Origin: Caecitellus pseudoparvulus
Lineage: Eukaryota > Protista > Bigyra: Bicosoecida
Direction: 5' to 3'
Length of the DNA: 64,000 bases
Assembly (NCBI GenBank): GCA_965644315.1
Contig: CBFFRQ010000036.1
Coordinates: 43,094 to 107,093, forward strand
The notes under the pieces are model-generated. The model was not told the origin of the DNA. It saw nothing but the letters and a program-made list of their open reading frames with translations, and ran no database searches. Shown here in pieces: positions 6,396 through 64,000 of this stretch; position 1 is the first letter of the stretch; each line of letters starts with the position of its first letter. A program made the position numbers and the translations under genes.

Positions 6396-9300
6396 TCACC
6401 GCGACTGGAACTTAAACAGGCTCTGCACCAACATCTTGAGCAGGATCATGCCCACAAGGAAGCCGGTGACGATGCCCATGTTGGTGAAGCGTGCGTCGTA
6501 GTCAAAGTCGTAGGTCTGGGCCGTGAAGTCTTCCAGTGTCATGGAGACGGGGCCGCGGGGAGTGATGGCTTGCAGGGTGAGGCAGTCCGACTTGTCGTTG
6601 CAGTGCACGGCGACTGTGATGAGTCCCTCCACGATGTACTTCAGGGGGTTCACGTACAGCATCCACACCCAGTAGTCGGGGACGAGGGGCTTGGGTGCCA
6701 GGAAGCCGCTGAACAGCATGAACAGGGATGCGCCGCCGCCTGCGATGATCTGTGCAACCTGCGGTGTCGGCGTGACGGCCATGAGCAGCTGGCCAGTGGA
6801 CACGAAGAAGAGCGCAGCCATGAAAGAAGCCAGGTAGAAGTACCCGAACACTTCCGGGCTCTTGTTCGTAAAGTCAATGAGGTTGTAGAAGGAGGCCAGG
6901 AACAGTGCCACGGCTGCTGCGCAAATGGGCACCTCCATAAGCAGCTGGGCACTGGCGTACGTGCTGGGGTGGTACATGTTCACTGCTGTCTCGCGGTAGA
7001 AGGGGGGGCGCTCCATGGCTAGCGAGGCGAAGGCCGTCATCATGCCGGAAATGCCCACGAACAGCGAGCCGATGAAGAGCACCCCCGAGAGGCTGTTGGC
7101 GCCTGCGACGGTGTCGCCCTTGACATTGGAGTAAATGAGACCGAAGATAATGCCCAGCATGGTGAGGATGCGCAGGCGCAGCCACATGTACTTGGGGTTG
7201 CGCCACGTGGACAGCACCTGGCGCCACAGCACGTGCTTGAACTGCACACTGTACGAGGCCATGTACCCTCCCTGCTCGGCTTGCGCCTTGAGGGGGGCGG
7301 CGTCGTCAAAGGCTGCAGCGGCGTCGGCGCCGCCGAGGCGTTCGCACTCGGCGGCGTTTGACGCACACAGTGCGGAGCTGGCGTACCACTGTGCGCACAC
7401 AGTGCCGTGGTCGGCCATCTTCGCGTCCTTGGTCAGCCCAGTGACGTGTCCCAGGATGCTGCGGTCGCCAGTGGCTGCCTCTTCCAGTGCCGCCACGCCA
7501 GCGGCTGTGGACTTCTGTCGCAGCACGCGGAGCATCCAGTCCGCTACGTTGGTGCGAGGGGGCAGGGGGGCCGTGCCAGGGACTGACTTGAGGAAGGACG
7601 TGAAGGTCGTCGCACGCTGCCCCATGGGGCCGAAGTACACTTGTTCTCCACGGGTCTTGAGTAGCAGCAGCGCGTCGAAATCGTAGAACAACGAGGCGGA
7701 GGGCTGGTGAATGGTGCAGACGATAGAGCGGCCCTGGGAGGCGATGCGACGCAGCACGCGCACCACCATGGCCGCAGACTGCGCGTCCAGGCCGCTGGTG
7801 GGTTCGTCCAGGAAGAGGATGGCGGGGTTGGACGCCAGCTCCACGCCGATGGTGAGCAACTTCCGCGCACCGGCGGGTAGGGCGCCGGGCGTTCCAGCGT
7901 TTCCCACCAGCAAGTCGGCAGAAGCCGTCAGGTCCAGCACAGCCAGGATGTTGTCCACAAACGCTTCCACCTGCTCGTCGGAGACGGTTTCTGGCAGGCG
8001 CAGTCGCCCGGACAGCGCAATACACTCCCGCACAGTGGACCAGGGCATGTGCTGGTCCATTTGCTCACAGTAGGCGCTGATGGCGGGCAGGTTCACGTCC
8101 CCCACCGGCTTGCCGTTCACGGTGATGGTGCCTTCCACAGTGCCCATGTTCTTGCGCTGTGCCAGGACATCCAGCAGGGTGGTCTTGCCTGCACCGCTGG
8201 CACCCATGAGGCACACCATGGAATACGGCTTGGCGAAGCCGTGAATGCCGTGCAGCAGCTGGCGCGAGGAGCCGTCTTCCAGGGGCACAGTGTAGCTGAG
8301 TGCGGACCACGCCATGGTCATGTGCGGGAATGCAATGGGCGGTGTGAACACCTTCTCCGCCATGACGTCCATGCCCACCGTGGACGAGGCATTGAACATG
8401 GGCACAGCCGGACCAGTCGTCGAATCAGGCGCTCCTTGCGCCAGGGCGGCCTCCATGCGCCGCACTCGCTGCTTGAACTGTTTGTCCAGGGCTTCTTGGC
8501 GGTCCTGCAGCAAGTCCTGTGTCGCCTGCAAGATGCCTGCCTCAGAATCCTCCAAGTGCACGGAGCGCCCGCCGCCCGAGACGGAGGAGGAGCATGACAG
8601 GGCAGCTGCCGCACAGGCAGTGAGGGCGAGGAACATGGCCAGCAGGACGGCAACAGAGTACCAGATCCACACCGTATCCGTCTGCACGTCGAAGGACTCC
8701 AGGTACACGTCTCCGCGGCGCACGGGTGAAGCGGGAGACACAGGGTCGTCGTACGCCGACGATTTGAACTCGTTGATGGTGAGGGCTCGCAAGATCCAGT
8801 TGAAGGGGGACAGGTACACCAACCAGCTGAGCCAGGAAGGCATGAGTTCCGGCGTGATGAGGAAACCAGCCAGGACGGAGGAAATGCCCGTGAGGGGCCC
8901 GGCAGCAGCCTGCGCGGCTTGCAGGTCAGGAATGGCGTGGGCTACGAAGCGGAACAGGGCGCCCATAGTCATGGACGCCAAGAACACGACGAAGAGGAAG
9001 ACGAAGAAGTGGTCCACGCCTGGCGTGAGGCCCACCATGAAGTAGGTGATGATGGAGAACAGCGACGCATCCACGACAGAAACGGGGGCTGCCATGAGCA
9101 CTGTGGACAGGACGTACAGCACAGGGGAGTACATGAGCGCGTCGCGCTGTTTGAGGACGATCTTGCGCGCGTAGTTGGTGGGCTCCACGGCGGAAATCTG
9201 GACGAACGCGACGAGGGCCGCGGCGAAGAAAATGACGCCGAACAGCGCCTGGAACTTGGTGTTGTCAGTGTCCCAGAACACACTGCCGATGACCAGTGCC

Positions 9301-11888
9301 ATGACGATGGCCTGCACCATGCGGGCGCGCAGTGCGATAGTGTCGCGGATGGTGAGCCGTGCCTCGCGCTGCAGCAGCACCGCCATTTGCTGGCAGCAGG
9401 AGGCGGTGAACTCCGGGCCGTACTGCGCCTGCACGAAGCTGGACTCCAGAGTGGTGGTGACGGAAGCCTGCCGTCGCAGGCTGGTGGCACTGATTGTGGT
9501 GGTGCCGGCAGGCGGCGTCGCCGGCATCACTTGCCCCTCCTTGCCGGGGCTGGAGTCACTGACGGCCACAGCCACAGCCTCAAGCGGCGCCGCCCCCCGT
9601 GCATCTTGCACGTCCTGTACCTGGCTGGCATTCCAAGGCTTCACAACGCCTGACGGGCGCAGGTCTGCATCCAGCACTTCCGTCGCCTCCGAGATGGTGA
9701 GCGCTTGCAGGTCAGCCGTGTGTGCTGCAATTTCCGCATCCCGCGCGTCGCCGCCTTCTTCCGTGTACAGCCGCGTCTCCGCGTCAATGAGGGCTGCCAT
9801 GCGTGGTTTGAAGGCTGCAAAGTGTTCCATGAGTCCCTGCGTGGTGAAGGTGGCCGCTTCGCGCTCCAGGACACTGCGGAACGTCGCATGCACCAGCGCC
9901 GCCCGCGCAGCCACCACTGCCGCAACAGCAGCAGATTTCCCCGCCGCCGCCACCGCCGCCTCCAGCGCAGACTCCAGATTCGTGCCTTCTTCGGCCAGCT
10001 GGGTGTATGCAGCAGCCAGGAAGGCCAGGGCGGCAGTGGGCGTGTTGTCAGGCGGGGTGAGGTGCCCGGGGCCGTACGTGACCACATCCACCACTGCAGC
10101 AGCCAACAGAGCGCTGATGGCTGAGTCCCCCGCCGTGGCGCCCGTCGCCACACCTGCAGAGGACAGCAGGGAAATGGGCACTTGGCTGGGCGAGGGCCCA
10201 GCGGTGGCCAGCGCGGCAGGCGGCAGAAACGCCAGCTGCTCCTTTGTCAGGTACTTGAAGCTTGCAGCGGCCTTCCATGCGACAGAGGCACTGCCGTCGC
10301 CATCCAACGGCTCTTGGTCAGGCCCCGTGGTCGGAGACGTGGGTGAGGGTGCCTCGCCTGCGCTGGTAGCGTCCTGTGGCGCCTGCCGCGCCGCGAGGGC
10401 GGCTTCGTGCTGCACCAACAGGGCGGCGGTTTTCTGCTTCAAGAACAGCTCCATGGGCGACGACACGAAAGCCTGCAGGAAGTCAGCAGTGTCTTCATCG
10501 GCCGGAACACTGAGGCCCAGGGAGTTCAAGAACGCCTCCACTCGGTCGCGCCGGCCGTGGTACATGATGCGGCCGTCGCGAATGAGCATGATGTGGGTGA
10601 AGGTTTGAAACGCCTCTGGCGGCGCGGCAAGCATTGACGACACGACGGTGCTGCGCCAGGCCTTGGCCAGAACACGCATGAACCGGCAAATGTCCACAGT
10701 GGTGGCGCTGTCCAAGCCCGTCGTGATCTTGTCCAGCAGCCACACACGGGACTGCCCCATGTACATCTCCGCAAAGGTCGTGCGTTTGCGCTCGCCCCCC
10801 GACACGCCGCGCAGCAGCTCATTGCCCACGATGGTGTCAGCGCACGATGTCAAGTGCAGCTCGGCCAGTGTGCGGTCTACGCGCTGCTTGATGTGTGCCT
10901 CCGCTGCAGAGGACTCCAGCTTCCCCAAGTCAGCGTTCAGCATGCGGTGGGCCAGCGTGAGCGTTTCCCGCACCGTCAGCGTGGCCAGGTGGACGTCGTC
11001 CTCGCCCACGAAGCCCACCAGACGCTGGATGTTCACGCTTGGATCATCGCCGGGCTTGCCGTTGTACGTCACCTGTGCAGTGTGTGAAGAGGGGCGGCCA
11101 GTTGAGAGATGCTGCGTTGGGAGGCAGCATTTGAAACCTGCCGCCACCACGCACCGACCCAGACAGCTTTTTCGCATCAATTCGCCCCGAAAGAGCTCGC
11201 ATGAAGGTCGACACGCCAGCCGTTCCGGGAGGGGCGATGATCTGCGGACAGGGGGGGGGCTTCCGGAACGTGATCCGCCGAAGCGGGAAGCGAGCGGACC
11301 ATTCCGCGGCCACCTCGCTGCCGCCTGCCGCAGACCCTGCCGACGCACCAGGGTCATGGTCCCAGGCTCAAGAGAACCAGACATGCCTTGCAGCACAGGG
11401 AAGTCCTTGGTCTTCGCCAGGCACGGCGGGGCAGGGGGGCCCCCAGCTGCGAGCAAGGGAAGGGTGCGGAAATTGAGGCTGGCGACACAAGGTGTCCCAG
11501 CCGCCCCACGCAATGATGGCGATCTCCAGGGGACAGGAAGGCACGGGGATGCAATTCTCATACATACATGCTCGGGTTGGTGCGGGAACCGTGTACCCTA
11601 GGTCCTTGAATTCGATCTGGAGGGTGCGGAAAGCGAGCGGAGTACAGCGGAGTGGCTGCAGCGGCAAACCCCGCAGCGGCCCGCATGCCGACGCACCTTG
11701 CAAGCTGGCATCTTGTCCATGGTGACTGCATGGTCCAACTGGCCGTCCAAGAATTCAGGGTTCCACACGCGCATGAGCTGCGCCACCTTGACGAGGCAGG
11801 CGCCTTCGCTGGCTTGGGACGCGGCATCAGGCGTCAGCTCCGCATCAGCTGAGCTGCCTCTGGCAGAAGCAGCTGCTGGCGCCGCCAT
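6396..11888 (-). CDS. Full-size ABCG / PDR-type ABC transporter (NBD-TMD-NBD-TMD), ~1700 aa; model complement(join(6396..11072,11155..11241,11349..11446,11568..11616,11697..11888))
   Basis: NBD1 has signature VSGGERKR and LLDKITTGLDS. NBD2 has Walker A GASGAGKT, LTIGVEL, FLDEPTSGLD and CTIHQPS. Two hydrophobic ABC2-type TMDs. Four phase-consistent GT-AG introns restore IEFKDLGYTV...MTL|IIAPPG...LSGS|VTYNG. Confidence 0.93.
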
Positions 11889-12236
11889 GGGTGAGCCTTG
11901 CTTGAGTGTGGTGAACTCACAACACAAAAGCATGGGGTGAATGGGGGGAGGTGGAAAGATGATAGTGAATGAGATTTGTGCCGGCCCCAGCTTTGCAACC
12001 CAGAGTACGCTGACAGTCAGCGCTCCCGCACAACACCCTCCCACTCCCTTGTCTCGTGCCCAATTCTCACCCCTGTGCTGGGCAAATTGCAGAGCATGCC
12101 AACTTGAAGCCTTTTACTTCGGCAGCATCTACCCACCCAACCTGCTGCATATTGAAACTGAAAGCAGGTCCCTTTGCATGCTGCAGTAGCGGGCCTGGAC
12201 TGCCTGGCGTGGTGGCGAGCGGAAATTGGACCGGGC
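11889..12236. promoter_or_regulatory. Probable bidirectional promoter between head-to-head ABCG and DUF89 genes
   Basis: 348-bp, less GC-rich spacer between divergent ATGs at 11888 (-) and 12237 (+). Inferred from gene geometry only. Confidence 0.45.
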
Positions 12237-13610
12237 ATGGCCGACGCCACGTCTTCTCCTGCAAAAGTGCAAGGGGCAGGTGCCCTGGACAAGGCGTTGC
12301 AAGATGCCCCTGCCCTGAGAGGTGTGGATGGTGGCTTCACTGCTACGAGCATCACACAGCGCCTGGCTCGCATCATGCGTTCAGCTTGCGCCGTCTCCAA
12401 GGCAGGCGCTTCTGCGCAATGTGGAGATGCTGTGGAGGCGCTAGCTGCAAGCATGGAAGCGGGGGGCGACATTCCCCCCCTGCAACCTGCGCCGACAAGC
12501 CTCCCTACCACGCACCGCATCGACTCTGCCTGGGCAGAGGCGTGGGAGGGAGCGTTTCCAGCCGGCAGCACCTGGCTCACTGTGCCGTGGTTCGACGTCG
12601 AAGCAGCCGCATACCGCCTGTTGCTGAGTGCACTGCGGCAGGACGGCGTGGAGGGCGCCTTGAAAGACGATTCCTTTGATCCTTTCGCGGCGCAGAAGGC
12701 TGCGCTCTTGCAGGCTGCAGAACAGCCGTGGGCGCAGTCTGTGGTGCCGCTGCTGGGGCATGCGTCTGACACAGAGCAGCTATTGCTGCGGGCACTGTGG
12801 GGCAACCGTGCCGACTTGAGTCTATCAGGAGGTGACCCTGTGACTCATGAAACGCAGGAGGCGGGCGGGGCAGCGCTTGGCCCCTTTGCTCGCGGCTTGT
12901 TGGCAGACGACTCGACTGCTGCGTTGGCGTTGCTGGGCGGCAGCTTGACTCGCGGCGTCTGCATGGTGCTGGACAACGCAGGGCTGGAACTGCTGTCAGA
13001 CCTGGCGCTGGCCGACCACCTGCTGAGCGGAAACGCCCGCCACGTGACTCTGCTGTGCAAGCCGGCTCCGATTTTCGTGTCTGACGCACTTCCAGGTGAC
13101 GTTCGCACGACCATTGACTGGCTGGCGGCGAGGGAGGTGGGTGGCGCCACCTGCCCTGCCACGCAGGCACTGGGGGCCAGGTTGCAAGGGTGCCTGAGTG
13201 AGGGGCGCCTGCGTATTACGACGCACGACTGGACTGTGTCTCGCCACGCGCTGTGGGAGGCGCCGCACGATCTTTGGTCGGAGCTGCGTGCCCACTCCCT
13301 CGTCATCGTCAAAGGCGACGCCAATTACCGCCGTCTACTGGGAGACCGCCTCGTGCCCTTTGACACGCCGTGGGCTGACGTGCTGCGTTACGCCACCGGA
13401 GTCAACCTCATCGCCCTGCGCACAGCTAAAAGCGGCGTGTTAGCCGGCACACCCCTCAGCGTTTGTGCTGCTGCCCAGGCATTCCTGGACCCCACAGCCC
13501 CGACAGTTGATGTGGCCGACTGGGACAAGGCGAAGGTGGCTCTGCTTGCGCGGGATGCCTGGTTGACGAGCGGGAAGTTCGGCGTCGTGCAGGTGCATAG
13601 GGGAATCTGA
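12237..13610 (+). CDS. ARMT1: ARMT1-like DUF89 metal-dependent damage-control phosphatase (YMR027W/ARMT1 subfamily), ~457 aa
   Basis: Family motifs WLTVPWF..AYR, DPFAAQK, ALWGNRADLSL, VLDNAGLELLSDL, KPAPIFVSD, KGDANYRRL, LRTAKS. First ATG at 12237; no intron needed. Confidence 0.88.
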   Translation: MADATSSPAKVQGAGALDKALQDAPALRGVDGGFTATSITQRLARIMRSACAVSKAGASAQCGDAVEALAASMEAGGDIPPLQPAPTSLPTTHRIDSAWAEAWEGAFPAGSTWLTVPWFDVEAAAYRLLLSALRQDGVEGALKDDSFDPFAAQKAALLQAAEQPWAQSVVPLLGHASDTEQLLLRALWGNRADLSLSGGDPVTHETQEAGGAALGPFARGLLADDSTAALALLGGSLTRGVCMVLDNAGLELLSDLALADHLLSGNARHVTLLCKPAPIFVSDALPGDVRTTIDWLAAREVGGATCPATQALGARLQGCLSEGRLRITTHDWTVSRHALWEAPHDLWSELRAHSLVIVKGDANYRRLLGDRLVPFDTPWADVLRYATGVNLIALRTAKSGVLAGTPLSVCAAAQAFLDPTAPTVDVADWDKAKVALLARDAWLTSGKFGVVQVHRGI

Positions 13611-25977: not shown

Positions 25978-28311
25978 TTACTCGGCAGCGCCGCCAGAGA
26001 CGCCGAACTCGATGCCCTGGGCCAGGGGCAGGTCTGTGGAGTAGTTGATGGTGCAGGTGGAGCGGCGCATGTACTGCTTCCAGGAGTCGGAGCCGGACTC
26101 GCGGCCGCCACCGGTCTCCTTCTCACCGCCGAACGCGCCGCCGATCTCAGCGCCAGAGGTGCCGACGTTGACGTTCACCAGGCCGCAGTCTGAGCCGGCG
26201 GGGCCAACCCACTTGAACACGTTCTTCATGTCGGTGGTGAAGATGGAGGAGGACAGGCCCTGGGGCACGGCGTTGTTCGCGGCGATGGCCTCGTCCAGGG
26301 TGTCGAACTTCAGCACGTACATGATGGGGACGAACAGCTCCGTCTGCACGATGGGCGCGTCGGCGGAGATCTCCACGATGGTGGGCTTGACGTAGAAGCC
26401 GGGCTTCTCGACGTAGGGCTCGCCACCGATGAGGATCTTGCCGCCCTGCTTCTTGATCTCTGCGATGCCGTCGACGTACTCCTTCACGGCTGCGGCGTTG
26501 TGCACGGGGCCCAGCAGGGTGCCGTCCTCCAGGGGGCTCCCAGGCTCGATGCTGCCGTACGCCGTCACCAGCTTGGACACGAAGTCGTCGTACTGGGAGG
26601 AGTGGATGTACAGGCGGCGCAGGGACGTGCAGCGCTGGCCGGCGGTGCCCACGGCGCCGAACAGGGACGCGCGCAGGGCCATGTCCATGTCAGCGTCGGG
26701 CATGACGATGGTGGCGTTGTTGCCGCCCAGCTCCAGGATGGTGCGGCCGAAGCGGGAGTGCACGATGGTGGACACGCGCTTGCCGACGGCGGTGGAGCCG
26801 GTGAAGGACACCAGGCCCAGGCGGGAGTCGTTGATGAGCTTCTCGCCGATGGTGCGGCCGGAGCCCAGGACCATGGAGGAGATGGCGCCAGAGAGGCCGT
26901 TGGCCTCCAGGACAGACGCCACGATCTTGGTGCAGGCGATGGTGACGAGGGAGGTGGAGGAGGCGCCCTTCCACACGTTCACGTTGCCGGCGATGAGGGA
27001 GATGGCCAGGTTCCACCCGAACACGGCGCAGGGGAAGTTGAAGGCGGAGATGATGCCCACCATGCCCAGGGGGTTCCACGTCTCCAGCAGCACGTGCCCG
27101 GGGCGCTCCGAGGGGATGACCTGCCCGGAGATGGTTCGGGAGAGGCCCGTGGCCAGGTCGCAGATGTCGATGAACTCCTGCACCTCGCCGATGCCCTCGC
27201 CCTTGATCTTGCCCATCTCCAGGGAGATGAGGGCGCCCAGGGGCTCCAGCTTCTCACGCAGGGCGACGCCGATCTGGCGCACGATCTCGCCGCGCTTGGG
27301 CGCGGGCAGGCACGCCCACTCCTTCTTGGCGGCCTCCATGGCCACGAGGGTCTCCTCGTACTCCTCCTCCGTGGCGAAGCGGATCTTGGCGATGGGCTTG
27401 CCATTGTAGGGGGCGTAGCTGGTGTACACCTCGCCCTTGCCGCCCCACTTGCCGTTGTACACGCCGGGGTTCTCCTCCTCCAGGCCCAACTCCTTAAGGA
27501 ACTGTGTGGGGGGCGGCATTCCGCGGGTGCAACAGTGCAGCGCCGTGGCAGGTTGACGCGTGTCAGCGGCGTTTCAGGCAGCTGACCCCGCCAAAGCTTC
27601 GGCCACATGTGCAGCTGGCACGGCAAGACCGCTGGCTTCAGCAAGCTCAGCCGAGCACCAAGCGTGGCGTTTCACGTGTTGTTGTTGTACGTACAGGGTA
27701 GTCGGCGAAAGTGAGAGGCTCAGCGGCGGCCATGGTGTCTGATGAGCAGTTCCGAACAGATGGTGCTCCCTGAGGTCAGAGCGCGGTAAGGCAGCGTGTT
27801 GAGACGGTCTCGGGCGATGTGCAGAGCGGCCGGGGGAATATTTGCAGTTGAAAAGTGGTGCACTGTGAAGAGTGCGTGTTTGGGCAAGCACGGCAAGCTC
27901 GGCGCACGGGGGGTGCACCCCCCCCCACTCGTGCAATTGCTGCCACCCGGTGCGCCCGCAAGTGCACTGCTGCTCACACGCCACGGAAGCATGTGCCTGT
28001 GTGGCCGACGCTGAGCGCCACAGGCCACAGCAACACCAGCACCACTTCATGACTCCAAGAGTACACCGCTGCTTGCTTGACAGCGGCGCTAGCCACTCAC
28101 CCACTTGTGCTGCACTGCGGGGGTGAGGGGGGACCATGTGGTTGGTCGGCCTGCGACGTGAACTCAACTCACAGCCGGCGCTGTGCGTACCTGCTGCTGG
28201 CATGGAGCGTGGGTGCCAGACACTGGCCGCGGCACGGCAAGTAAAACGCCCTCCTTGACGAGCTGCACTGGCCAAGGTCCGCCTCGCAGTGCTCGTGACA
28301 GCAGCAAGCAT
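25978..28311 (-). CDS. ALDH7A1: Aldehyde dehydrogenase family 7 (antiquitin, alpha-aminoadipic semialdehyde dehydrogenase); long model complement(join(25978..27501,27695..27769,28101..28114,28191..28311)), 577 aa; short isoform from ATG 27733, 520 aa
   Basis: Motifs [67 protein letters not shown] (catalytic Cys), [38 protein letters not shown]. Exon [13 protein letters not shown]|FLKEL is phase-consistent. Very strong GC3 codon bias. Confidence 0.95.
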
Positions 28312-60303: not shown

Positions 60304-61099
60304 GCGCTGGGCTTTTGCTTTGCACCATCCTCACGGAAGACCCTGCTTCAGCTGTGTTCTCACAGCTGAGGAGGGGTGTTTGGCTCCCAACTCTTCCGTG
60401 CAGTGAGTGGTGTGAGGAACCATCTCTGTTTGCTGTCAAGCTGGTGCCAAGGTGTGTGTGTGTGGAGCTCTTGCTCCAGGCCGCACACTTCGGCCACCTC
60501 TGAAATCCAGCTAGCTTTGCATTGCACCACACAGCACCCCCTCTTTTACTCATGACCCGCAGAGCACCTACGCACCTTGTTACAGGCACACCCATGCGAA
60601 GTGCCGTCGAAGACCCGTGCGAATCTGAGCAGCAGGGAAGGAGGCGGAGTGGTGAGCGTGCGTGTCCGTTGGCGAGGTGGAACAGCTGACGAGGCCGGCT
60701 GCAAGCGTGTCGCTTGGGCGTTGTCTCAGACTAGCTCATCAATAATCAGGGGTATCAGACGGCACTTCCTAGGTAGAGCAATCATCACTACAACGCTGCG
60801 GTGTGCGGCTGGCCCGGCGTCACGTACAATCAAGATGAATAGCAGTGGCTGGTGGCTGTCCCAATTCCGCACCTCCCCACTCCACTTCTATCGCGCCTGG
60901 GCCCAACGCAGGGTACGGTGAAGAAATTCAGGGGGCATTGGCGAGAGCGCTGGCACTGTGGACTTTGTGGGTTACAGTTTTTGTTGCTCGACCATGACTG
61001 TTGTGGGTGTCCATCCGACCTTGATCACGCCCACAGCGCAGTTCACCGGCCCGTCACCTGAGCGCGCTCTGTAAGGAGAGTTTGAAGAGTGTTTTTTTT

Positions 61100-61315
61100 C
61101 TAGAGCTCAATTTTGCGCTAGTGAAGTGAGTGGGGCGACTGCAATGCTAGTGAGAATGCATGCCCAGAGGCACACTAGTGAGCGGGGGTGGTTGTGCTCG
61201 GTACTAGTAAATTTCGCTGGGCGAGGCGCTACTAGTACGGAGGGCCGCCCAGCGCACTACTAGCGCACCGCCCAGCTGGACATTTTTCCTAGTAGTACAT
61301 TCTTCGCTAGCGCAA
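61100..61315. repeat. Phased array of CTAG-cored short motifs with unique spacers and nested inverted repeats
   Basis: CTAG starts at 61100, 61118, 61147, 61175, 61204, 61232, 61260, 61289, 61307 (spacings 18,29,28,29,28,28,29,18). IR 61113-61126/61302-61315 (13/14 match). IR 61216-61236/61256-61276 (18/21 match). Confidence 0.8.
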
Positions 61316-61425
61316 CAAGTTCGGTCTGCCGTGAATCGATTGCATTGAAACACACCTTGACAACCTGAAGAACAATGAAGTAGCTTCAGCACGGATGGCT
61401 CGGCGCCAGGTCGAGGGAGGGCATG

Positions 61426-63467
61426 TCAGGTTATCCTGGACACAATTTTGTGCGTAAGCACGGCCATCTCCGTCTGTACGTGGTGCTTCATGCGTAACGA
61501 CGTCCACAGCATGGCCAACATACAGCACGCACGCACCTTGTCGTCAACGGTCAGGCTGCTCAGGTCCCCACAATCAGTCACCCACTGCTTGTTCTTCACG
61601 TTCAAGCAGTCGACAGCAACGTTGTACGCAGCCTCCATCCATCGTAAGACAATCCTGGCCCCTTTTGCCACATCTTCTGGGCCACTGAGCGCCGCTTCCA
61701 AACGCCTGAAGCTGGGGTCGAAACGGGGGCCGCTACTGGAGTCCTCGGATCCCCGGCGTTTGAAAACAGCCTTGATGGTGGTATGATTGACGATGGCCTC
61801 ACGGGCAACGTTGACTTCCTGCAAGCACAGGCGGTGCCTTGATCGATCAGCCCTTTTTTTGCCCCTCTCAGCCTGTGGCACAAAGAGAATGCATGAGAAA
61901 GGAGCATTCGGGCCCAGCATCACCTGTGCGGGTCTAGACTCACACACATACTTACCTTGGGCACCCAACTGTGGCGGTACTCAGGGTCCTCGGAAGACAC
62001 CTCGAAGAAGGCTGGGTCGTGGTCAAGCTGAATGCTTGCACCTCCGGTGCACTTCTCATGGACTGGCTCGTACTTCCTCTGCATCTCGTGCCACGGTTCG
62101 AACTTTCCTAGGCATTCCGAACTGCGCAATGCTCAGAAGTCTGCTATGCTGCGCTCCACGGACTCGGAAGGAGTCCTCTGGGCACTCACCTCGTGATTTT
62201 GGCGCGGCACTTGCTCCTGACATTGCTCATGGCGGCCTTCAGCCCGGCGTAACTCGCACTCTTGCTGCTCTTCGCCATGTCCTTCAGCGCGCAAAGCACG
62301 CCACCCCGCTCGGTAAGCTCCTTCTGTATCGAAACCTTCCTCGCTGCTGCTATCACGTTTTCGAGGCATTTGAACTTCCACGGTGCTGAGAACCTAGGGT
62401 CGTCTAGAGCCCGGCTCGTGGCTTGTGCTCCAACCGGCACCCCATCTCCCCCTTCCTCTGTGGCTCCAGCCACCTCTCGGGCAACGTTCTGCTCGGCCTC
62501 AACTGCCTCGATGGCTGCTCGTAGTGTGTCTACCAGGTTCTCGGGGTCTGCCAAGATGAACGAAGGGTTCTCGAGGATGAGGTCGACCACGATGCGGCGG
62601 GCTTCTGCCCTGAACTTTCGGGGCCATGGGATTGAGTCTGCGCCCCCACGGGCTCTAAGAGTTCACCCAGCTGGTCTCCCCCACGAGCTCCACGTTTCTT
62701 GGAGTTCTTTGCTTCCTGCTTCTGCGTTAGTGGACCAACCATACCCACTACCTGTGAAGTTCTGAATTGCCCCAGGCCAAGTGAGAGTTGGACAAGGGAC
62801 ATGGTGTTTGCGCTCCAAACGAAAACCTCGTTCAACAACTCGATGAGACGTTTCTCGCTGGGCGTGCCAATAGACTCAAGCAGCTCCTTCGCCGATTCAA
62901 GCTTCTCAGCAAGGTCAAGCGGCCTTGGTGCCTTGATCGGTCTGCAGCTCGCCATTGTATTTGCGGCGAAGGCTTCTGGGGAAGGGGAGCGGGATTGGTC
63001 CGGTCCAACGAAGCTTAGCAGTGGCCGTTAGAACGCTGTGGCTACCGTGACTGCAGAGCAGGTACGTACGAGCCGCAATGGCAGCACTAGAACCGCCCCT
63101 AGCTGTGCCGAATAGCTCCCTGTCATCAAGGCATGTGAGTGCGTTGGCATCACCTGCACATGATGCTAGGGTGGGGTGGGGAGGCGCTGCACGGGCGTCG
63201 ATCCTGTGGCGCGAACCAGTACGTACCATTACCCTCCAGAACGTCAGGCACCCCAACGACGGACCCAGTGCAGTTGCCAGGGTGAGATGCCCAAAGCACA
63301 ACATCCCGTCGACGTTTCCCGGCCATCACAGCTTTGGCAGCCGTGCTGCGGTTGAAGAGGTGTGCAGCCTCGAGGGGTGTGGCGATACTTAACGAAGCCA
63401 CGACACTTGCCGTTGTGTCCCCTGCATCCTCGCTGTCAGAGCCCATTTCATCAAAGTGAAGTGACAT
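61426..63467 (-). CDS. Orphan multi-exon gene, ~550 aa, unknown function; exons 63467-63227, 63153-63070, 62975-~62670, ~62605-62190, 62121-61956, 61872-61426
   Basis: Four junctions are clean and phase-consistent: 63226-63154 gtacgt..gcag, 63069-62976 gtacgt..ccag, 62189-62122 gtgagt..gcag, 61955-61873 gtaagt..acag. They join five separate short ORFs from the track. The junction near 62600-62750 is unresolved. Confidence 0.65.
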
Positions 63468-63758
63468 GGTGAATGGTTGGGGTGGGTGTGCAACAAAAAG
63501 CGTATCTGAGGACTTGGTGGGTCTGAAAGTACATGCAACGGTGGAATGTCGAGACAGACTGGAAATGCACTGGACGAGGTTGCAAGGCGCCTTCAATGCC
63601 CACAGCCCAACACACACCAACGACCAACATGAAGATGCTACGGCTGCCTGGCATTGTGTTGCGTTCTCGCCTCGCTGTGCGCGTTGCGTACGTACGGTAG
63701 GGGCGCCAACGCAAGCAACGGAACTCCGCCGGTGCCCTCACGCTACAGAAGACTCAGA

Positions 63759-64000
63759 ATGAGCGCCCGCTGCAAGCTCTGCAACAAGGAGTTCGACGAC
63801 GAACGAGCTCTTGGCGGCCATATGGTCCATTGTCGTCGCAGGCGGATGAAGGCGTACAAAGAAGCACAAGTCCAACGGCTTCGTGAGGTTCAGGAGCGGC
63901 TGGCTTCAGAAGCTCGAACTACTCGCCTTGAACGCAAGCGCCACCAGCAAGCCGCGGCGCGGCCTCAACATGATGTGGGTGCCAAGCGCATGGCAGCCGG
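63759..64000 (+). CDS. Zinc-finger protein, N-terminal fragment (C2H2/C2HC finger followed by charged helix), truncated by window end
   Basis: ATG 63759 reads MSARCKLCNKEFDDERALGGHMVHCRRRRMKAYKEAQVQRLREVQERL..., matching C-x2-C-x3-F-x5-L-x2-H-x2-HC. Open to 64000. A possible upstream exon from ATG 63629 splices in frame via gtacgt..ctacag. Confidence 0.65.
   Translation, partial: MSARCKLCNKEFDDERALGGHMVHCRRRRMKAYKEAQVQRLREVQERLASEARTTRLERKRHQQAAARPQHDVGAKRMAA

Follow-up and report, generated by a model that had tools for sequence, protein, structure and literature searches.

The locus and its phased CTAG array

The DNA analysed here (the window) is a 64-kb stretch from a eukaryote with a 30.6-Mb assembly, which is present in marine samples. 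Ordinary host genes in the window include those for an ABCG/PDR-type transporter (6396-11561), an ARMT1-like phosphatase (12174-13610) and an aldehyde dehydrogenase (25978-27519). An uninterrupted open reading frame of about 9,300 amino acids occupies positions 32410-60303 on the plus strand; its product contains beta-rich modules repeated many times and has a basic tail, and a membrane span is likely at the C-terminus. On the minus strand, positions 60724-60792 probably encode a SNORD49-family C/D box snoRNA: the C and D boxes agree, as does the guide segment, and the score of 32.7 bits (E 1e-5) falls short of the gathering score of 37. A transposon is inserted about 260 bp upstream of this SNORD49-like snoRNA, and the window contig stops at position 64000, within the element. 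The features of this terminal portion are collected in Table 1.

Table 1. Features of the element in the window
Feature	Position	Strand	Remarks
Left copy of putative 2-bp target site duplication (TSD), GC	61049..61050	+	Right copy outside window
Left terminal inverted repeat (TIR) CCGTCAC, 7 bp	61051..61057	+	Right end GTGACGG
Left 2,950 bp of family A TIR DNA transposon (6,847 bp)	61051..64000	+	Full copies L032, L034
Left subterminal array, nine YR-CTAG-TG-type sites, seven at 28-29 bp period	61100..61310	+
Imperfect dyad linking sites 6 and 7	61216..61276	.
Partner gene, exon 3, stop 61426	61426..61872	-	dN/dS 0.39
Partner gene, exon 2 (predicted)	61956..62121	-	GT..AG sites, phase conserved in family B; dN/dS 0.18
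Partner gene, exon 1	62190..62955	-	dN/dS 0.49 vs family B
Transposase gene, 5′ start, N-terminal C2H2-like finger	63759..64000	+

Nine CTAG tetranucleotides start at positions 61100, 61118, 61147, 61175, 61204, 61232, 61260, 61289 and 61307. The spacings given in the preliminary description of this DNA (18, 29, 28, 29, 28, 28, 29 and 18) proved exact on recount, and its estimate by eye of about 20 CTAGs in the preceding 60 kb matches the actual count (20 before 60 kb, 23 before 61100). Over the whole window CTAG shows no depletion, the ratio of observed to expected occurrences being 1.02. Chance at local composition does not yield the array. Neither nine sites in 212 bp nor a chain of seven at 27-30 bp arose in 20,000 local dinucleotide shuffles, and the count or phasing was matched by none of 3,000 such shuffles in each of two larger regions; when nine sites were placed at random, a chain of seven at 28-29 bp appeared in 0 of 200,000 trials. 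The distance from the end of the last core to the stop codon (61426) of the gene on the opposite strand is 116 bp, close to the roughly 110 bp noted at first.

The cores had been described as ACTAGT-like palindromes. The CTAG centre stands, but the full motif is YR-CTAG-TG, with T at +1 and G at +2 each found in 16 of 20 sites; since it reads inward from both ends of the element, the motif is directional. The spacers had been said to differ and not to form a tandem repeat. TRF accordingly found no tandem repeat across the array, but the spacers are not wholly unrelated, for sites 6 and 7 are held in an imperfect dyad (30 nt, 80%). The inner arms of this dyad, about 13 bp long, are conserved in a sister family (family B, see below) and the outer arms are different. 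The set of spacings gives a helical-phase R of 0.68 at 10.5 bp, which falls to 0.49 when the 28-30 class is left out; a rule that ties every spacing to the helical phase, being chosen once the data had been seen, is only suggestive.

Ends, copies and derivatives of the element

Searching the genome with positions 60900-61500 returned 12 identical copies together with diverged ones, all starting at or just after 61051. This multi-copy boundary is sharp and lies 49 nt before the first core, placing the array 50-260 nt inside the left end of the element. Starting from the same first base, CCGTCACC is joined by seven different left flanks. Complete copies elsewhere measure 6,847 bp and finish with the letters GTGACGG. 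Five of the six complete copies are flanked by a 2-bp TSD (AT, CG, TG, CG and AT), the one of L040 being counted if the degeneration of its left tip is taken into account. The remaining complete copy (L041; G000 C94), the only one without matching 2-bp duplication, carries a matching change at position 4 of both TIRs (CCGC.. and ..GCGG). Among other copies, L033 (G000 C49) lacks the right tip and is flanked by a target duplication of about 18 bp, not 2; L037 (G000 C19), a family-A copy, carries an insert of some 4.4 kb close to element position 2,960; and L048 (G000 C56) has a degenerate left end in which only a few cores are retained before the sequence diverges. A contig-end copy on C15, whose right flank starts with GC, may be the same insertion as that of the window.

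Distinct junctions set the number of family-A insertions at at least eight, with the proviso that some contig-end assembly copies may be one insertion counted twice. The copies are about 99.9% identical and vary at nine alignment columns; in five of these the difference is one base in the length of a homopolymer run. In the data of another study, a contig follows the flank as far as 61051 and then extends for over 2.5 kb in which the element is missing; the site is thus empty in that sample. Contig depth, which does not equal copy number, hints at very different copy numbers between samples. The element has been mobile recently.

The junctions refute one of the readings put forward initially, in which the array consists of stacked Helitron-type CTAG 3′ ends. 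At one site a hairpin is indeed followed by CTAG, as this reading would have it. The copy boundaries, however, fall at the TIR and never at a CTAG, the sites being internal to the TIR terminus and present at both ends; moreover, TSDs are found, and the element encodes a DDE transposase and no Rep/helicase.

Looking for a mirror array, a TIR and a TSD at the far end of the element had been proposed as a check, and all three are there: inside the GTGACGG terminus and its 2-bp TSD, 11 CTAGs lie within 355 nt. Their spacings range from 17 to 49 bp, which makes the strict period specific to the left end. Both ends are also kept in a 2.0-kb deletion derivative and in sister family B. The latter is represented by one 11.9-kb copy with an intact transposase and by a 3.4-kb derivative, present in at least seven copies, whose partner gene contains stops. 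The retention of both arrays in the 2.0- and 3.4-kb derivatives is expected for cis-acting ends. The family-B copy L042 (G000 C44:140502-152380) exceeds family A in length by about 5 kb and has extra open reading frames after the transposase.

Comparison of the two families separates cores from spacers. Identity reaches 77 of 80 in CTAG columns against 257 of 423 (61%) in spacer columns (Fisher p 6e-12), and the period in family B reads 28, 29, 30, 28, 28. Cores and period are therefore conserved while spacers vary, the outcome by which the preliminary description had proposed to judge the array. Conserved cores with drifting spacers are the pattern expected of selected cis-acting sites, and we regard the nine sites as putative cis-acting protein-binding sites. 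A pattern search of the 30.6-Mb genome found 96 phased CTAG triplets at 28-30 bp, every one of which is explained by left ends of family A or its sister family; the reversed-pattern control gave 7.

The spacers bear equally on the idea of a repeat-spacer guide array, or a processed small-RNA array, partnered with the protein of the adjacent orphan gene. What speaks for it is the geometry alone: spacers that differ are set at a constant period, and a gene without known function lies upstream. However, the spacers are identical in 12 of 12 family-A assembly copies and have colinear homologues in family B, which means that point substitutions, and not the acquisition of new spacers, account for their changes. 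The genome BLAST of the array stretch returned nothing beyond element ends, and at the right end the same cores occur with no such period. No Rfam match was found over the array. On the DNA side this reading fails, since identical spacers in every copy belong to the condition under which the preliminary description would itself give it up, and we hold it to be very improbable.

The transposase and its divergently transcribed partner

Intact copies of the element contain a 1,086-aa open reading frame starting at window position 63759. Its product has the catalytic layout of the CMCT (EnSpm/CACTA-Mirage-Chapaev-Transib) clade, with D390, D525, C-x2-C at 540-543, H776-x3-H780 and E800. The arrangement D..D..C-x2-C..H-x3-H..E is the mark of this clade, Plavaka included (PMC12730594). 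C543, H776, H780 and E800 are invariant across five aligned proteins; three metagenomic relatives (about 25% identity) all retain D525, H776, H780 and E800. Distant relatives keep one of the two C-x2-C cysteines.

A Pfam scan of the element's own proteins returned a weak C2H2 finger alone and did not reach the Plavaka model PF18759. One relative (P0001) matched Pfam Plavaka at E 6.7e-5 with 22.7 bits, short of the curated cut-off of 26.3. Language-model neighbours in the Atlas include PF18759 clusters, with a score of 0.91 to clusters composed to 65% of PF18759. Two AlphaFold runs were both of low confidence and the fold searches were not significant, the top Foldseek match of the structure model (pLDDT 34) being RAG1 at E 0.27. 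Only zinc fingers came back from a sequence search of the PDB, three word-indexed protein searches (covering proteins of 0.55-1.75 times the query length) yielded no new relatives, and none was confirmed in scans of JGI metagenomes and IMG/VR. Judged by its sequence, the transposase is a divergent DDE enzyme of the CMCT/EnSpm clade and probably Plavaka-like.

Twelve or more other transposases belonging to this lineage occur in the same genome (on G000 C141, C30, C190, C149, C147, C68, C161, C111, C43, C12, C18, C169, C50 and C40), and the open frames of many exceed 1,000 aa. The genome-wide pattern search found no phased CTAG triplets at the ends of these families; any arrays there need another motif or period.

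The orphan reading frame beside the array is best read as the last exon of a three-exon gene, divergently transcribed from the transposase gene and with a predicted product of about 459 aa. The window copy is one C short in a C-run at 62642. The base is present in four other copies and also in short-read contigs from two samples, and its lack in the window is probably an assembly error. An intron near 62750, our first guess, was discarded: the frame change turned out to be this one-base C-run difference, absent from the other copies. An exon-by-exon search with the partner gene gave no recognised family, and the Atlas search with exon 1 gave just weak generic helical-repeat matches. Amino-acid identity between families A and B is 50-73% for the orphan and 83% for the transposase. 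Substitution patterns indicate that the orphan gene is under purifying selection.

That the orphan is under such selection, and evolves faster than the transposase, would fit a variant of the transposon-end reading. Here the sites would be mainly targets of an orphan-encoded anti-silencing or autoregulatory protein (VANC-like, or TnpA in its regulatory capacity) and would be dispensable for cutting. There are precedents, as transposon-encoded sequence-specific regulators have been described for VANDAL and Spm (10.64898/2026.08.24.746577). The arrays, however, hug the termini instead of the divergent promoter, just 3 CTAGs being found at element positions of about 1,900-2,700, and both arrays are retained in non-autonomous derivatives. 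We consider this variant unlikely.

The position of the left array 116 nt beyond the orphan stop also raises the possibility of an additional role as a structured element, either hairpins in the 3′ UTR of the orphan mRNA or a cruciform in the DNA. The minus strand folds with a z of -5.2 against shuffles and still exceeds core-fixed shuffles (z -3.8 in family A, -3.2 in family B). This excess is due to the dyad around sites 6 and 7, and a plain ladder of independent sites leaves it unexplained. Inverted pairs of (longer) binding sites would nevertheless produce an equal signal. The covariation term is unfavourable (+2.15), conserved stem columns being invariant and the outer arms broken, and the right array has no folding excess (z -0.3). 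A structural role thus seems improbable to us.

A probable binding-site ladder at the ends of a Plavaka-like element

The array very probably represents the left subterminal repeats of a cut-and-paste transposon from a divergent, Plavaka-like branch of the CMCT group. Its CTAG sites would most likely be docking sites for the element's own proteins. An element-encoded protein would bind each site, forming a ladder; bound at both ends, it would provide specificity and synapsis of the two ends, and the DDE transposase would cut at the 7-bp TIRs and insert with a 2-bp stagger. As a 7-bp TIR holds little information, the arrays would supply the specificity, as En/Spm repeats do for TnpA. On the nature of the binder we can offer guesses. 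The N-terminal region of the transposase may equally well be responsible or not; the divergently transcribed orphan protein, in a TnpA-like role, is a serious candidate that falls somewhat short of this, and a host factor is a long shot. A 2026 preprint points out that, outside plants, the DNA-binding domain of Spm is as a rule joined to the transposase (10.64898/2026.08.24.746577), which slightly favours the transposase.

The preliminary description had preferred subterminal sites of the En/Spm type. The boundary, the TIRs, the 2-bp TSDs, the second array, the CMCT-type DDE transposase and the conserved cores amid drifting spacers all uphold the subterminal assignment. The affiliation has to be amended, the element being Plavaka-like and not CACTA proper, and protein binding remains putative.

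In En/Spm, subterminal repeats bind TnpA/TNP1, are required in cis and vary between families (PMC2613891). The element shares with En/Spm short TIRs accompanied by many short motifs, a different arrangement of the two ends, a motif that differs between families and a second protein that lacks conservation; here too the reiterated motif is present at both ends and retained in non-autonomous derivatives. Unlike En/Spm, with its CACTA/CACTG termini and 3-bp TSD, the element has neither such termini nor a TSD of that length, its own being 2 bp. The second En/Spm product arises by alternative splicing, whereas the element's second gene is separate and divergently transcribed. The element further differs in its motif of about 8 bp, near-palindromic, and in its strict 28-29 bp period with non-repetitive spacers.

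The resemblance to Plavaka (PF18759; PMC12730594; red-algal members, 10.1101/2025.02.11.637652) extends to the large DDE transposase, in which C-x2-C and H-x3-H lie after the second D and before E, the short TIRs, the 2-bp TSD and the accessory gene inside the element. The TSD is 2 bp in PlavakaA and 2-3 bp in PlavakaB (PMC12730594), and the 2 bp found here fall within the 2-5 bp of CMCT elements. The termini differ: Plavaka has TGT..ACA (A) or CATCA..TGATG (B), and the element CCGTCAC..GTGACGG. Its CCG..CGG also departs from the usual CMCT 5′-CA..TG-3′, to which PlavakaA is likewise an exception (PMC12730594). In addition, the transposase is too divergent for a direct Pfam match, the accessory gene is without detectable domain, and the host does not resemble a fungus or red alga. 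VANDAL/VANC systems are comparable in that there, as here, the transposon has an accessory protein not assigned to any known family, which could bind clusters of short motifs within the transposon itself; VANDAL, however, is Mutator-like, no sequence similarity to it was found, and the arrays here are confined to the ends.

In its basics the finding is ordinary, since elements of the En/Spm kind are already known to have subterminal arrays. The array is a known kind of feature in an apparently undescribed variant lineage of a known transposon group, marked by CCG termini, a 2-bp TSD, a divergent orphan partner and a strict left-end period. Within the CMCT clade, to which the ancestors of RAG1 belong, the end structure of elements on the Plavaka side appears to be little described, and a literature search found no report of Plavaka from a stramenopile-like protist. 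The family is young, some of its copies are intact, an empty site is known and mini-elements occur naturally, which makes end recognition directly testable; the unusual regularity of the period gives a clear spacing prediction.

A CCGTCAC-type terminus, the same or a one-base variant, is present at matching positions in three metagenomic loci (L049, L050 and L051). As these relatives are single copies, their termini are deduced from position, not from TSDs. In L049, 55 nt of flank precede CCGTCAC and a tandem array of period 29, which has a GTGAGGTGG-like motif, no CTAG, and lies about 75-330 nt inside the terminus. L050 terminates at GTGACGG, and L051 has TGACGG 730 nt past the transposase, with two 29-nt copies just inside the right end. 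The common terminus suggests a single lineage. That the period of about 29 bp, rather than the motif, is a conserved property of the whole undescribed CCGTCA-terminus lineage seems rather doubtful, the shared period comprising one clear case (L049) and one weak (L051). If true, it would imply a fixed protein ladder of about 2.7 helical turns per step, on which sequence specificity changes between families; that specificity might come from the orphan partner, which would then be a new family of DNA-binding or anti-silencing proteins. A resemblance by eye of partner exon 3 to the partner genes of L050 (3785-5068) and L051 (730-2091) failed a profile test against shuffles, and homology to them is therefore not claimed. 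Those two genes, both on the minus strand and without a Pfam family, are homologous to each other (E 8e-13).
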